From Octopus sinensis (lineage: Eukaryota), in the NCBI RefSeq assembly GCF_006345805.1, contig NC_043013.1, positions 21,762,001 to 21,826,000 on the forward strand: 64,000 bases of DNA, written 5' to 3'. A model generated the notes under the pieces. That model was not told the DNA's origin. It was given only the letters and a program-made list of their open reading frames with translations, and made no database searches. Shown one piece after another: positions 26,108 to 47,170 of this stretch; the first letter of the stretch is position 1, and every line of letters begins with the position of its first letter. Position numbers and translations under genes: made by a program.

Positions 26108-27120
26108 AGAGCCGACATTTTTCATCACAGCATGGAGGTTTGGGGCTATCTTTATCCCTCTTGTTCATCGAGTATTTAGTAGTTAACTCTTCGCATGAGT
26201 GTGTGCGTGTACATGTATTATGTATGTATGCATGCATGCATCTATATATGTATGAATGCAAGTATGTATGTATGTATGTATGTATGTATCTACGTATGTA
26301 TGTATGCATGCATGCATCCGTGAATGTATGTATGTATGCATCTGTTTATCTATGTATGTATGTATGTATGTATGTATGTATGTATCTATCTATCTATCTA
26401 TCTATCTATCTATCTATCTATCTATCTATCTATCTATCTGTCTGTCTGTCTGTCTGTCTCTCTGTCAATCTGTCTGTCAGTCAGCCTATCTATCTACCTA
26501 GCTATCTAACTGTCTATCTGTCTGTCTATCTATCTATCTATCTATCTATCTATCTATCTATCTATATATCTATCTATATATCTATCTATCTATCTAATTT
26601 GGTATTGAGTCCGTACCTTTATATGACGTTGGACTTAACCAATGATAGAGCCAAGTAAATCAAAGTCCTGACCTCAATATAACAGACTAACACATTTTTG
26701 AAGGTGGTGCCTTAGTCTTGTCCAACTGACTGTGTATAATTCCAACAAAATAAATAAATAAAAACAAGAAAATGACGCCCTTACCTCTGTTTATTTCGGT
26801 GTAAGTCCAATCCTTGTAAAAACGCAATTCAGCAGTTCTATGATCTTCGAAGCAGACATTTCGTGTAACTGATGTCAGTAAAGTAACTCAAGCTATCAAA
26901 GGTACTCGAAGGTATACTAGCTTTGTCAATAAAATCTAAAGGACATCTTCCTGTAAGAAGAAGAAAATAGATAAATCAATGTTGTCTTTTGTAGTTTTTC
27001 GTAATGGTGTGGAACTGTTTCACGTTGTATAGTTTTATTATTTATGAATAATGAGAAATAATAAATAGATAAATTTTTTACTCTTTAATAGACATGAATA
27101 TTGTGATAATATTGTGGTGC
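26108..27120. repeat. Local duplication copy B' (paralog of 46237-47170)
   Basis: Shared AGAGCCGACATTTT..CATGGAGGTTTGG, the (TATG)(TATC) compound microsatellite, intron flanks and the PAN exon. Confidence 0.9.
26785..26950 (-). pseudogene. Broken PAN/Apple exon (type B'), 166 nt
   Basis: Same splice sites as 46809-47039 (cttacag|GAAGATGT; AACAGAG|gtaagg). An internal deletion of about 71 nt removes three Cys and shifts the frame into TAG: GRCPLDFIDKASIPSSTFDSLSYFTDISYTKCLL//DHRTAELRFYKDWTYTEINR. Confidence 0.8.
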
Positions 27121-27369
27121 TAAAAGAGAGGATAATAATAATAATAATAATAATAATAATAATAATAATAATAATAATAATAATGATAGTAATAAGATTT
27201 AACCACTAATTTTCATATAGAGGGCCTCTTTTATCATCATTAGCAACAGTAGCAGCCCCAGTAGTTGTAGCAGCAGCAATAAATCTTTTATTCGTATTTT
27301 ATTTTATTTTATTTATTTATTTTTTTAATGAATACTTAATAATTTAACTTTACTTGAAAAGAAAATTTT

Positions 27370-30150
27370 TAACAGTACACCGAATCGCTTGTCCAATGGT
27401 TATAAAGGAAGCTGCCAGCCTGATGGCAAAAAAATTTCAAATGGCAGAATATCTTCCCCGAATTTGAACCTGGAAGGTCACTTAAACGGGATTTGTCCCA
27501 AATTAAGCCCCTAAAGTTCACCACCACAACGACCAGAAAATCAAAAAAGTAAAAGAACTAAATGGAACCGGGAAGAATATAAAGAAGTAACATATGCTTA
27601 TTACTTTGCATTAAGCAGGCCAACCGAAGAAAAACACACCGCAAACTCCTACAGAATTTGGAAGAGCCGGAATCCAGCTAGCAGACCAAACCTGGATGAA
27701 AACAGATTAGCAAATGTTAGAAGAGATATCTTCAGAAATGCCAGACTCACAGATGCAGAATTAACCTCTATTAAAAACGTGGTAGAGAATGACTTAAATG
27801 TAAGTCAGGAAAGAAATAACGAAGCTGAGAAGAGGCATGTTGGGCCACAAGCATTGACTGAAAGGCGACCATCTGCCGAAACGACTCAAGATCCTGAAGA
27901 AGAAGGAAAATATAATGACCCTAGAAAAACAGCCCGGAAAATGATGTCGAAACAGAATTTGAAGACCACATATTTGTTGAACAACACAGAAAATCTATCA
28001 TTGAAATGAAGCAAGAAGTTCTGAATGAGCTTGCAGTTGTAGGCCATGCAACTATGAATGATAGGGAACCACTCCATAAACTCTCAAATGCACACCAACA
28101 TAAAACACAAATAAAAATTGGCAACTGCGTTACACAAGAAATCATACAACAACTAAAACCCGATCTTAATAAATTCAATGAAATTATTTACTCTGTCGCT
28201 AAGGTAATCGAAAGACGTTGTTTAATACCCCAAAAGCCAATAATACCAAATTCGAAAAGAAAATCAAACTGGAGGAGTAGAATTGAAACTGAAATTGAAT
28301 CATTGCGAAGGGAGATATCAATATTAACTGAGCTAATCTCTGTAAATGATGTAAGATCAAGAAAAGGCAGGAAGATTGTGAGAAAATATGGACACTCAAC
28401 AAGAGAAGAACTAATGTCAGCGAAAGAAACACTTAAACAAAAAGTTCAAGCAAAAGCTCAGAGAATACGCAGATTTGAGAAAAGAATCAAATTCTACAAA
28501 CAAAATATGTTCAAATCCAATGCCAAATCATTTTACAGGGAAATAAGGAACGAAAAAGTAACCATTGAAAATTCACCCCTAATGGAAGAAATTGAAAACC
28601 TTTGGAAGGGGATCTGGAGTGATGAGAAACCATACAATGAAAATGCAGAGTGGATCAAACGCACCCAAGATGCCTAAAAAAATCTACAAGAACAGGTATG
28701 GGAAGACATCTCAATCGCCGACATAAGGAGGGCACTAACGAAGGCTCATAAGTGGAAATCCCCTGGTATTGATAGACTACCAAATTTCTGGCTCTCATCA
28801 CTCTCGTCCGCACACAAAATGTTAGTAATACTATTTAATAGTATCATGAAAGACCCGGAAAAAACACCACATTGGATGGTAAATGGTATTACTTACCTCC
28901 TCCCCCAAAATAACAAAACGAAAGACCCAAAAAACCACCGGCCTATAACATGTTTATCTACTACCTGTAAGATTTTGACATCTATTCTAGTAGAGAAAAC
29001 ATATACGTTTATGGTAGAGAATAACCTCTTTCCCACTGAACAAAAAGGATGCCGAGGAGGCTCATACGGATGCAAAGATCAGCTCCTAATTAATCGCATG
29101 ATACTTGAGAACTGCCATAACAAGCGCAGAAATCTCAGCTCTTCATGGATTGATTATAAAAAAGCCTTTGACAATACCACATTCGTGGATTCTGAAATCA
29201 CTGAACATTTTCAAAATTTCTCCTGTGATTTCAGATATTTTAAAGTATAATATGTCACTATGGAACACGAAGCTCCAATTATATCATTCTAATGGAGTAT
29301 TGCACTCAAACAACATTAGCATCAACTGCGGAATTTTCCAAGGTGACTCACTTTCACCACTAATTTTCTGCATAGCACTAATACCACTCTCAAGTGAACT
29401 GAATAGAACAGGATATGGCTACAAAATTGACAACAGGAAAAAAAGCCATCTATTTTATATGGATGACTTAAAGCTATATGGCAAAGATGATGAAGAGCTT
29501 GAAGGATTATTACAATACTGTGAAAGGATTCAGTGATGATATCGGAATGGAGTTCGGCCTTGAAAAGTGTGCCAAAGCCAGTTTTAAGAAAGGGAAATTG
29601 GTAAAGTCTAGTTCAATTGAATTAGATGTCGAAATAGTAATAAAGGAACTTGAGCAGGAACAAATCTATAAATACCTAGGAATAAATGAAGGCTCTAGTA
29701 TCCAGCATACAAGCATGAAAGAGAAGGTTAGGAAAGAATGTTATAGAAGAGTTCGAGCAGTCCTGAAGTCTGAGCTGAATGCATATAATTAGGTGTTAGC
29801 CATAAATTCCTTAGCAGTACCAGTTGTTCTTTATAGTTTCCATATGCTTAACTGGAATACCAGTGAAATAATGAAAATTGACAGAAAAATCTGCAAGCTA
29901 CTGACTTGCAATAAGATGCACCAATAAGATCGCCTTTACCTTCCCAGAGCTCAGGGAGGTCGAGGTTTGATCCAGCTTGAACTTACATACAAAACCACCA
30001 CAATCGGACTGGCCAAATACCTCGAAGCAACCAACGATTGGATGCTAAAACTTGTTGAAAAAACATGAAAGACCAAAAAAACATCACTCTATTCTCAAAG
30101 AGAGCAAAAAATTCACTGCTGATCTCTTAGATACCCATCAGATTGAGCAG
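27370..30150 (+). mobile_element. Decayed near-full-length R4/Dong-like element lacking its 3' end
   Basis: N-terminal KRTKWNREEYKEV..LANVRRDI; RT motifs HRPITCL, EQKGC, WIDYKKAFD, GIFQGDSLSPL, FYMDDLKLY; many stops and frameshifts. Confidence 0.88.
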
Positions 30151-45640: not shown

Positions 45641-45649
45641 TCACATAAG

Positions 45650-46300
45650 AATCACAGATGGAGTAGTTTGGGAATGTTTTACAAATCTTCACTGTGCCAC
45701 TAAAACATTGGATTTGGACAATCCGCGTCAGTTTTTCTTTTGCTCTTTCTCTGTGAAACCGAGTATTTATAGGTTTTTCTGCAAATGTGCAAAATTTCTG
45801 CTACATAATCTAATGCATTTCTGATGAAAGGTGCAAACGAGACTTTATGGTCAGGGTACAAGAGCTGTAAGTTTGCCTTAAATGTTCTATCTTCCTAAGA
45901 CTTTTGATTGTACATACACATCCGCTGGTCAGCTGACCCCTGCAATAGTGCATGACTTTTTTCCCCTGAACCACAGAACAATATCAGGTCTGCTATATTT
46001 GCACCGAACTGATGTTTTTAGGGGGTGGGGAGTTCCACCAGTATTCCTTGCTTTCAAAAGGTCTGATTACTTGCTGGTTCTAACATGGCTTTGATCTATA
46101 CGTCCGAGCAGTCCTTCCTATGGGTAGCATCGTAAATAGTCTTTGCAACTATATCATGCCTCAGGGGCACGTAGAATCTCGTAGGCATTTTGTCGCAACT
46201 GCTGATGATGTGGGTGACATCTTTCACACTGGTATAGCAGAGCCGACATTTTCCATCACAGCATGGAGGTTTGGTGCTATCTTCGTCCCTATTGCTCATC
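45650..46300 (-). mobile_element. RLE-clade non-LTR 3' fragment
   Basis: CRLCYTSVKDVTHIISSC..PLRHDIVAK..PADV..LQKNL*ILGF; its 5' stub is also present at 26108-26170. Confidence 0.75.
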
Positions 46301-47170
46301 GATTATTTAGTAGTTATCTGTACGTATGAGTGTGTGCGTGTGCATGTATGTATCTATATATGAATGTGTGTATGCATGCATTTATGTATGTGTGTATGTA
46401 TGTATGCATGCATGCATCCATGTATGTATGTATGCGTACATACATGTATGCATCCATGTATGCATGCATGAATGATGCATGCATGTATGCATGTATGTAT
46501 TTATGTATGTATGTCCCTCTATCAATCTATCTATCTATCTATCTATCTATCTATCTATCTATCTATCTATCTATCTATCTATCTATCTATCTATCTATCT
46601 ATCTATCTATCTATCTATCTATCTATCTATCTATCTATCTATCTATCTATCTATCTGTGAATCTAATTTGGTAATGTGTCCGTACCTTTATATGAAGTTA
46701 GACTTAACCAATCGATATATTTTTGAAGGTGGTGCCTAATCTCGTCCAACTGACTGTGTATAATTCCAACAAAATAAATAAATAAAAACAAGAAAATGAC
46801 GCCCTTACCTCTGTTTATTTCGGTGTAAATGTAATCCTTTTGAAAACGCAACTGAAATATTGTATGATCTTTAGTTGACAACTGGCATCTTTTCTTATTA
46901 AAGTAATAGTCAAACGACCGGCAATTTGGTTTTACTTTGCATTTATGCAGACATTGTTTGTAATTAGAAACATTAAAGACACCCAACTGATTGTTTGAAC
47001 TTAGAACAGTTTTGTAAATCAAATCCAAAGGACATCTTCCTGTAAGAAGAAGAAAATAGATAAATCAATGTTGTTTTTTGGAGTTTTTCGTAATGGTGGT
47101 GGGACTATTTCACGGTGAATGGTTTTATTAATTTAGATTAACGAGTAATAATTAATAGATATCAATATTG
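46237..47170. repeat. Local duplication copy B (paralog of 26108-27120)
   Basis: See 26108-27120. Confidence 0.9.
46809..47039 (-). CDS. Internal exon (231 nt, phase 1-1) encoding a PAN/Apple-like domain (type B)
   Basis: Acceptor ttttcttcttcttacag|, donor GAG|gtaagg; open frame RCPLDLIYK..YKQCLHKCKVKPNCRSFDYYFNKKRCQLSTKDH..DYIYTEINR, a classic PAN signature. Confidence 0.85.

Follow-up and report, generated by a model that had tools for sequence, protein, structure and literature searches.

Coding exons that outpace their introns are known from the crotaline venom phospholipase A2 (PLA2) and abalone lysin genes, and the multigene families of immune receptors, among them the major histocompatibility complex (MHC), are known to evolve in concert except for hypervariable segments that are not homogenised. 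The coding regions of the mammalian trappins also evolve faster than the introns, with both replacement (dn) and silent (ds) rates accelerated in some lineages; in the armadillo and pig trappins the silent sites of the fast exon look accelerated too (PMC2831891). In the conotoxin superfamilies, the introns are conserved and the exon of the mature peptide is hypervariable (PMC3862624). The present analysis concerns exon B, coding for a PAN domain, and its damaged copy, the pseudo-exon B′, both located in a stretch of 64,000 nucleotides (nt) of Octopus sinensis DNA (contig NC_043013.1, positions 21,762,001 to 21,826,000, assembly GCF_006345805.1), called the window throughout. The window holds part of a tandem array of genes for small, putatively secreted proteins composed of a signal peptide, two PAN domains (PAN1 and PAN2), a Cys-containing linker (LINK) and a third PAN domain (PAN3). 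This array probably represents an octopod-restricted tri-PAN tandem family, the divergence of which has apparently been shaped by diversifying selection together with segmental conversion, B′ being a dead orphan fragment.

Like the trappins, conotoxins and PLA2, the octopod family is tandem or multicopy and its products are small, Cys-rich and putatively secreted; one or two exons diverge more than the rest of the exons and the introns beside them, and the positively selected sites, as assigned by approximate models, are concentrated in particular exons. As in the armadillo and pig trappins, an apparent acceleration also affects the silent sites of the fast exon. In contrast to these systems, the octopod genes encode the PAN fold and belong to the octopod lineage, the ratio of replacement to silent rates (omega) does not exceed 1 over the whole PAN2 exon, and clear traces of conversion between paralogs are superimposed. 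The resemblance to the MHC-type families relates to gene segments of strongly different coalescence depth, short identical tracts, a conflict between flank and core, and variable patches on a conserved framework; unlike those families, the octopod family is known here from gene sequences alone. The octopod case is new in fold and lineage, and its principle is already known.

PAN1, PAN2 and PAN3 all score above the gathering cut-off (21.4) of Pfam PF00024 (PAN_1). The PF00024 match and the fold, which is predicted for the octopod PAN2, are common to the octopod family, Sarcocystis muris SML-2, Toxoplasma MIC4, the PAN domains of plasminogen and HGF, and the apple domains of factor XI and prekallikrein. 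In the AlphaFold2 model of the closest relative, the PAN2 segment has a predicted local distance difference test score (pLDDT) of 71-91, PAN1 and PAN3 being poorly modelled. The predicted order of PAN2 elements is strand-strand-helix-strand-strand-strand (strands 4-12, 19-22, 41-45, 50-54 and 63-74, helix 26-35, in PAN2 numbering), and the modelled fold, an alpha-helix on a five-stranded antiparallel sheet, is that of the PAN/apple structures. Foldseek matched the model to SML-2, the plasminogen PAN domain, the HGF N domain and the factor XI apple domain, with E values from 3e-6 to 1e-3, and also to the prekallikrein apple domain and TgMIC4. SML-2 of Sarcocystis muris is a galactose lectin with two apple domains. 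Like the microneme lectins, the octopod proteins are small, putatively secreted and contain only tandem PAN domains. Unlike the solved examples, they have the closest relatives found restricted to octopods, and the sequence identity to any solved structure is only 15-23%. In contrast to classic apple domains, the octopod PAN2 has five Cys residues (2, 29, 33, 39 and 51, invariant in 12 copies) and no C-terminal Cys within the exon. This number is odd, and the linker exon carries one invariant Cys (..SVGCG..), which may close PAN2 in the way of the apple-type N-to-C disulfide.

A protein search with the concatenated A (PAN1 exon), PAN3 and B′ pieces returned only octopus proteins, named "uncharacterized" or "Apple domain-containing" (O. 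sinensis, O. bimaculoides and O. vulgaris), and a profile search of 1.8 billion representatives found close relatives only in octopods, including Argonauta hians. Full-text literature searches brought up no paper joining octopus or cephalopods with PAN or apple domains.

Exon B and pseudo-exon B′

Exon B codes for PAN2 in an intact gene, here called gene 1 (coordinates of all features are given in Table 2). It matches Pfam PAN_1 with 41.3 bits, its translation, RCPLDLIYKTVLSSNNQLGVFNVSNYKQCLHKCKVKPNCRSFDYYFNKKRCQLSTKDHTIFQLRFQKDYIYTEINR, is a PAN domain with 62% amino-acid identity to PAN2 of O. sinensis LOC118761179, and the frame stays open when B is joined to the neighbouring gene 1 exons. 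Canonical splice sites are present on both B and B′ (ttacag/GAAGATGT...AAACAGAG/gtaagg). Compared to B and all relatives, B′ has suffered a 71-nt deletion (codons ~31-55) and a 6-nt insertion; its frame is broken after codon ~32 and then runs into stop codons, which bears out the loss of about 71 nt and the death of this copy proposed in the original prediction. The remnant on its own gives no Pfam PAN_1 match. B′ is located in a 19-kb spacer between the stop exon of gene 1 and the ATG exon of the next family gene (A′ gene), with retroelement sequence on either side. Besides B′, no further family exon has been found by tblastn (E up to 10) and open reading frame (ORF) scans in the 17.1-36.0 kb part of the window, nor by Pfam on the candidate ORFs at 12.4, 18.1 and 47.4 kb. 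Window positions 18.1-35.8 kb show no homology to the syntenic O. sinensis spacer (6 kb; fetched locus L002, 3.0-9.0 kb), so B′ has no counterpart there. B′ is an orphan, dead pseudo-exon.

If B′ were a functional alternative exon, mutually exclusive with B or of the "poison" type, and its flanks conserved as splicing-regulatory elements, the intact AG and GT and the very conserved splice-adjacent sequence in B′ and all family members would be accounted for; this is very improbable, as B′ lies ~9 kb downstream of the PAN3/stop exon of gene 1 and ~9.7 kb upstream of the ATG exon of the A′ gene, outside both modelled transcription units, is out of frame and hits stops (166 against 231 nt), and carries 8 specific changes in its upstream flank. 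A mutually exclusive exon was rejected on position and frame. Purifying selection as the keeper of the B′ splice flanks was rejected as well, since B′ is a dead orphan exon.

In the codon alignment of B and B′, 25 of 51 codons change the amino acid and 2 differ purely synonymously (about 24 of 50, and 2, had been reported from a manual alignment), the framework residues RCPLD, Y..CL, DH, LRF, KD and YTEINR being kept as described. The identical intron runs of 65 nt on the donor side and 35 nt on the acceptor side have been confirmed; the further statement that the intron flanks are near-identical holds for these runs, and farther out identity is only ~88-90%. Divergence amounts to 27% in the exon (42/153) and 12% in the flanks (27/225), a difference beyond chance (Fisher p=2e-4), so that the usual conservation of exon over intron is indeed inverted in this pair. 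Beyond the perfect runs, the ~1-kb homology block has ~88-90% identity, with a 44-nt indel and microsatellites of variable length. The B′ fragment carries (GATA)n/(CATA)n repeats and a truncated piece of a retroelement, with other transposable element (TE) sequence at both ends.

The richness of the region in microsatellites and TEs could favour a collapsed or chimeric repeat assembly as the origin of the identical flanks. Such an artefact is scarcely credible, because perfect identity covers only 85 and 48 nt, within ~1 kb at 88-90% with copy-specific indels, and the same flank conservation recurs in independent assemblies of three other species. The 48-nt polypyrimidine/acceptor region is also conserved across all family members.

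In the original prediction, the pair was read as the product of strong positive selection, with patchwise conversion as the alternative. By the former, B and B′ would be recent duplicates whose cores were driven apart with the introns unchanged, the 71-nt deletion killing B′ later. The 25 replacement against 2 purely synonymous codon differences, the kept framework, the deletion as sole lesion of B′, the site-level selection signal in the family (see below) and the silent differences at same-residue codons (2 over 14.7 sites, tiny numbers, giving 0.136 against 0.12 in the flanks) agree with this course of events, which is nevertheless quite improbable. Nei-Gojobori counting (NG86) gives dN 0.337 and dS 0.362, and pairwise maximum likelihood 0.364 and 0.328, with omega ~1; the changes fall 15/15/12 on codon positions 1/2/3, and in both variable patches silent and replacement rates are equal, ~0.3-0.4. 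A four-taxon comparison of B, B′, the O. sinensis LOC118761179 exon and one O. vulgaris exon revealed B′-specific changes at similar density in the upstream flank (8/116) and the exon (14/160), the exon excess of the pair sitting at sites that vary among the intact relatives too. Moreover, B′ stands without partner exons, so there is no sign of a past working gene at this site. The pair alone gives no evidence of selection since a recent duplication, and it does not by itself show the positive selection read from it.

The comparison of flank and core histories fits the conversion alternative better. Sites grouping B with B′ make up 5 of 6 informative sites in the flanks and 1 of 10 in the exon core (Fisher p ~0.008, calculated by hand on few sites); some adjacent states in the exon are shared, for example TGG by B′ and O. 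sinensis and TAC by B and O. vulgaris. The 85-nt run across the donor boundary, at a background of 10-12% differences, has a probability of 2e-5 to 1e-4 (expected runs per 500 nt, 0.001-0.007), and the O. sinensis and O. vulgaris relatives differ at several sites within the same region. The conflicting grouping, the 85-nt tract, the orphan position of B′ and the even density of its changes indicate mosaic ancestry or conversion, and the sequences point to recently shared or converted flanks and exon ends placed around an already diverged core. Pseudogene decay as the cause of the exon excess was rejected, since an exon that is dead cannot change faster than the flanks beside it. A striking pair with diverged exon and identical introns can stem from a dead fragment with mosaic history.

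Several repeats accompany the PAN2 exon. Most paralogs of three species carry an (ATT)n/(GTT)n microsatellite that precedes the PAN2 acceptor by ~120 nt, in the same place in the fetched loci L001, L002, L004, L005 and L009, and the B clade has (GATA)n/(CATA)n repeats ~160 nt downstream of the exon; these microsatellites predate the paralog splits. In B and B′ alike, a retroelement begins just past the ATT repeat.

Divergence and selection across the family

The exon-diverged, flank-conserved pattern is a family-wide property and is not specific to B and B′. It has been followed in 45 pairs among 10 genes of three Octopus species, each exon being compared with its own 100-nt flanks (Table 1). 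The dN of PAN2 lies above flank divergence in 45/45 pairs, and all six pairs within the B clade have a p-distance of 0.20-0.29 in the exon and of ~0.10 in the flanks. The four-fold values follow the flank values across the four exons, and their variation from 0.077 to 0.310 implies unequal coalescence depths within the same genes and points to region-specific conversion or recombination. In broad terms, every exon has a history in common with its own flanks; for PAN2, the four-fold value of 0.31 is near that of the flank (0.26), so exon and flank are largely of one history. Within PAN2, the silent divergence of one gene pair varies from ~0.04 to 0.5 among segments; over codons 36-58, B is almost identical to the O. 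sinensis gene, and half of the silent sites of the O. vulgaris gene are different there.

Table 1. Divergence and approximate site-model results for the four exons (10 genes, 45 pairs; p, p-distance; four-fold, divergence of four-fold sites at identical-residue codons in the same gene pairs; LRT, likelihood-ratio test of M2a against M1a)
Exon	Exon p	Flank p	Pairs with exon > flank	NG86 dN/dS	Four-fold	M0 omega	LRT (p)	omega2 (share of codons)
PAN1	0.136	0.092	37/45	0.148/0.164	0.077	1.31	27.5 (1e-6)	3.5 (31%)
PAN2	0.367	0.262	45/45	0.473/0.735	0.310	0.94	32.8 (8e-8)	3.15 (19%)
LINK	0.168	0.217	9/45	0.148/0.431	0.243	0.56	0.06 (0.97)	no omega2 class
PAN3	0.133	0.150	14/45	0.126/0.236	0.157	0.72	1.1 (0.57)	no omega2 class

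The codon models M0, M1a and M2a were fitted with own Goldman-Yang (GY94/F3x4) likelihood code, and their results are approximate. A class of codons with omega of about 3 is supported in PAN2 and PAN1, LINK and PAN3 serving as negative controls. A run with 11 PAN2 exons gave an LRT of 34.0, omega2 in the PAN2 runs being ~3.1 at 19-22% of codons, and the PAN2 test on a tree built by the unweighted pair group method with arithmetic mean (UPGMA) gave 36. Codons 39-76 with their own tree gave an LRT of 39 at M0 omega 1.43, and for codons 1-38 the site-model test was not significant. In the run with 11 exons, posterior values above 0.8 were obtained at PAN2 codons 14, 20, 21, 32, 45, 48, 52, 61, 62, 64, 66 and 69; in the predicted model, the candidate sites 62, 64, 66 and 69 alternate along strand beta5, which suggests one exposed face. 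Counts made site by site on a parsimony tree lacked the power to judge single sites.

As a non-circular check, site classes were set on the eight non-B-clade exons and the rates were read in the three intact B-clade genes. Compared to the flanks, replacement is 2.9 times faster at variable sites (p=1e-5), 2.4 times at intermediate sites and 0.97 times at conserved sites. Silent change at conserved codons equals the flank rate. Measured against the exon's own silent rate, replacement at the independently defined variable sites gives a ratio (N/S) of 1.3-1.5. In HV2 (codons 59-70), summed over three close pairs, silent change is 0.5/24.7 and replacement 24.5/83.3.

Several points weigh against diversifying selection, and some of them also favour a neutral mosaic, in which the PAN2 and PAN1 loops would be unconstrained (omega ~1), conversion would homogenise the introns and other exons, and positive selection would have no part. 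(i) The original prediction looked to dN/dS in more paralogs; the exon-wide omega of PAN2 does not exceed 1 (NG86 mean 0.64, with 3/45 pairs above 1 and with dS inflated by multi-hit codons; M0 and tree counting, both 0.94), so that selection over the exon as a whole does not stand. (ii) The silent rate of the whole exon in the B clade is ~2 times the flank rate (p ~0.01-0.02); either the proximal flanks are partly constrained or converted, which inflates flank-based omega, or the exon has an older ancestry. (iii) Recombination, argued above to be present here, inflates M2a LRTs and can produce false signals. (iv) The site models come from home-made code with a fixed neighbour-joining topology, fixed relative branch lengths and a fitted global scale, and the LRTs were computed without a multi-nucleotide mutation term. 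(v) In 30 M1a null simulations through the same pipeline, the LRT reached 13 in one replicate, the others staying at or below 3.4. (vi) The 45 pairs are phylogenetically non-independent. (vii) In a crude comparison, selected sites are not enriched in loops over secondary-structure elements. The strong heterogeneity of silent divergence between and within exons, the conversion tract and the flank/core incongruence would likewise follow from neutral mosaicism.

A purely neutral mosaic is still unlikely. N/S is above 1 at the independently defined variable sites and far higher in HV2 of the three close pairs; the M0 omega of PAN1 is 1.31 (NG86, 0.91); PAN2 codons 39-76 keep their signal with their own tree; LINK and PAN3, under the same conversion regime, give none; and the PAN2 exon and its flank are largely of one shared history. 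At the level of the family, positive selection at part of the PAN2 and PAN1 sites is favoured. The PAN1 and PAN2 replacements are most likely due to diversifying selection acting on a binding surface. The replacements would then be adaptive and lie on a ligand-binding surface, and the proteins may be secreted recognition or lectin-like molecules.

In the combined process of selection and conversion, segmental conversion or recombination among paralogs would give each gene a mosaic history, homogenisation being strongest in PAN1, PAN3 and their introns and weakest in PAN2 and the linker. Recent copying would account for short tracts like the 85 nt at the donor of B and B′, the direction and timing of conversion being presumed. 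Recurrent amino-acid replacement in PAN1 and PAN2 would equal or exceed the neutral rate and, in PAN2, be focused on codons ~9-35 and ~59-70 around an invariant framework of Cys and aromatic residues, and birth-and-death turnover of the family would leave B′ as a dead by-product. If true, this lineage-restricted cephalopod family evolves in the manner typical of molecules for recognition, defence or venom: amino acids are replaced fast and in patches, the disulfide scaffold stays rigid, and the tandem genes undergo birth-and-death and gene conversion. It is possible, if doubtful, that octopods have a secreted tri-PAN repertoire in which PAN1 and PAN2 are diversified recognition surfaces for lectin-like, immune or other ligand binding, diversifying selection at a few surface patches maintains variability, and segmental conversion both shuffles and homogenises the scaffold, a repertoire apparently undescribed in the searchable literature; this would be an invertebrate recognition repertoire built on the PAN fold. 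The selection signal could be assessed only after the whole family had been sampled.

Gene models and organization of the locus

The window is TE-rich eukaryotic DNA of ~36% GC. Mapping of octopod proteins onto the window and nine fetched loci gave exon maps for 10 genes (O. sinensis, O. bimaculoides, O. vulgaris and the window). A family gene has six exons, successively: ATG and start of the signal peptide, rest of the signal peptide, PAN1, PAN2, linker, and PAN3 with the stop codon. The AG/GT boundaries are kept in every copy, and the proteins have ~260-280 amino acids, with one domain per exon. Exons 1-2 encode a hydrophobic N-terminus, MLRRNYIRIIFLFYISLTFGNG, a putative signal peptide. The gene 1 exons within the window join as an uninterrupted ORF (Table 2). 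Tandem family genes are present in the window and in the fetched loci L005 and L006. Synteny exists with the LOC118766702 region of O. sinensis chromosome CM016875.1, the identity being 92-95% (TE copies up to 98%); none of the fetched loci is identical to the window, and the 5′ end of the A′ gene is 95% identical to that of LOC118766702.

Table 2. Features of the window (positions in the 64,000-nt stretch)
Feature	Position	Strand	Remarks
Exon B, PAN2 exon of gene 1	46809-47039	minus	231 nt, phase 1-1
Pseudo-exon B′	26785-26950	minus	166 nt, frameshifted PAN2 copy; splice-site motifs retained
B′ fragment	26107-27135	minus	~1 kb: pseudo-exon, ~185 nt upstream intron, ~680 nt downstream intron
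Gene 1 part homologous to B′ fragment	46238-47200	minus	from self-comparison and pairwise alignment
85-nt tract	46744-46828	minus	20 exon + 65 intron nt; identical to B′ 26720-26804; candidate recent conversion
48-nt tract	47027-47074	minus	13 exon + 35 intron nt; identical to B′ 26938-26985
Gene 1 exon 2	61414-61449	minus	second half of signal peptide, ..FLFYISLTFGNG; ATG exon 1 beyond window end
Gene 1 PAN1 exon (A)	60610-60867	minus	Pfam PAN_1 24.3 bits; splice sites, joined ORF
Gene 1 linker exon	36729-36824	minus	ELWNDF...YYFVD
Gene 1 PAN3 exon with stop codon	36025-36221	minus	Pfam PAN_1 23.0 bits
A′ gene exon 1 with ATG	17051-17081	minus	next family gene; MLRRNYIRII
A′ gene exon 2	13756-13791	minus	signal peptide part 2
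A′ gene PAN1 exon	12940-13197	minus	PAN2, linker and PAN3 exons beyond window start
ATT repeats upstream of PAN2 acceptor	47165-47300, 27100-27160		
Hydrophobic intron stretch before PAN1	60868-60925, 13198-13265		gene 1 and A′ gene
Segmental duplication	12720-16277, 60406-63925		~3.5 kb
RVT_1 element	5744-8888 (also 1-872, 4944-5781)		~3.1 kb
Mariner-type transposase remnant	53821-54429	plus	Pfam Transposase_1 E 2e-26
ORFs neighbouring the mariner remnant	52921-53523	minus	
Perfect tandem duplication	50929-51138		105 bp

The two PAN1 exons of the window form an ordinary pair, unlike B and B′, with 8/261 differences, dN 0.020 and dS 0.084. They and exon 2 of both genes are carried by the segmental duplication, the copies of which are 93-94% identical. 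Just ahead of the PAN1 acceptor, the in-frame translation of the intron gives a hydrophobic stretch resembling a signal peptide, FIFVFVFWLLNLPGFVT, owing to which tblastn runs through the acceptor; this stretch contains TGA in gene 1 and TGT in the A′ gene. The TGA as a nonsense mutation of gene 1 was rejected, since it is intronic and lies upstream of the true acceptor. The stretch may have been left over from an earlier arrangement of the exons.

The RVT_1 (Pfam) element is located in the PAN1-to-PAN2 intron of the A′ gene, and at least four O. sinensis paralogs have copies with 94-96% identity in this intron (L001 20900-24065, L003 18223-20734, L007 17343-20470 and L009 15507-18660). They could go back to an inherited insertion that conversion has kept similar, or else a young and abundant TE could have inserted independently. 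Family genes of O. sinensis (L002) and O. vulgaris (L006) carry intronic copies of the mariner-type remnant, 92-94% identical, and the perfect tandem duplication is placed within retroelement-derived sequence.

The counterpart of the gene 1 3′ end in O. sinensis (L002 2040-2831, the upstream neighbour of LOC118766702) is 93% identical; it has no annotated protein and its PAN3 exon looks disrupted in the N-terminal part, whereas gene 1 is intact, so that this counterpart may be a pseudogene. An annotated O. vulgaris protein of 298 amino acids (L006, OX597830.1, 44.77-44.83 Mb) is a chimeric model fusing two tandem family genes, which skips the PAN2 exon of the first gene (L006 12811-13041), intact in the DNA.

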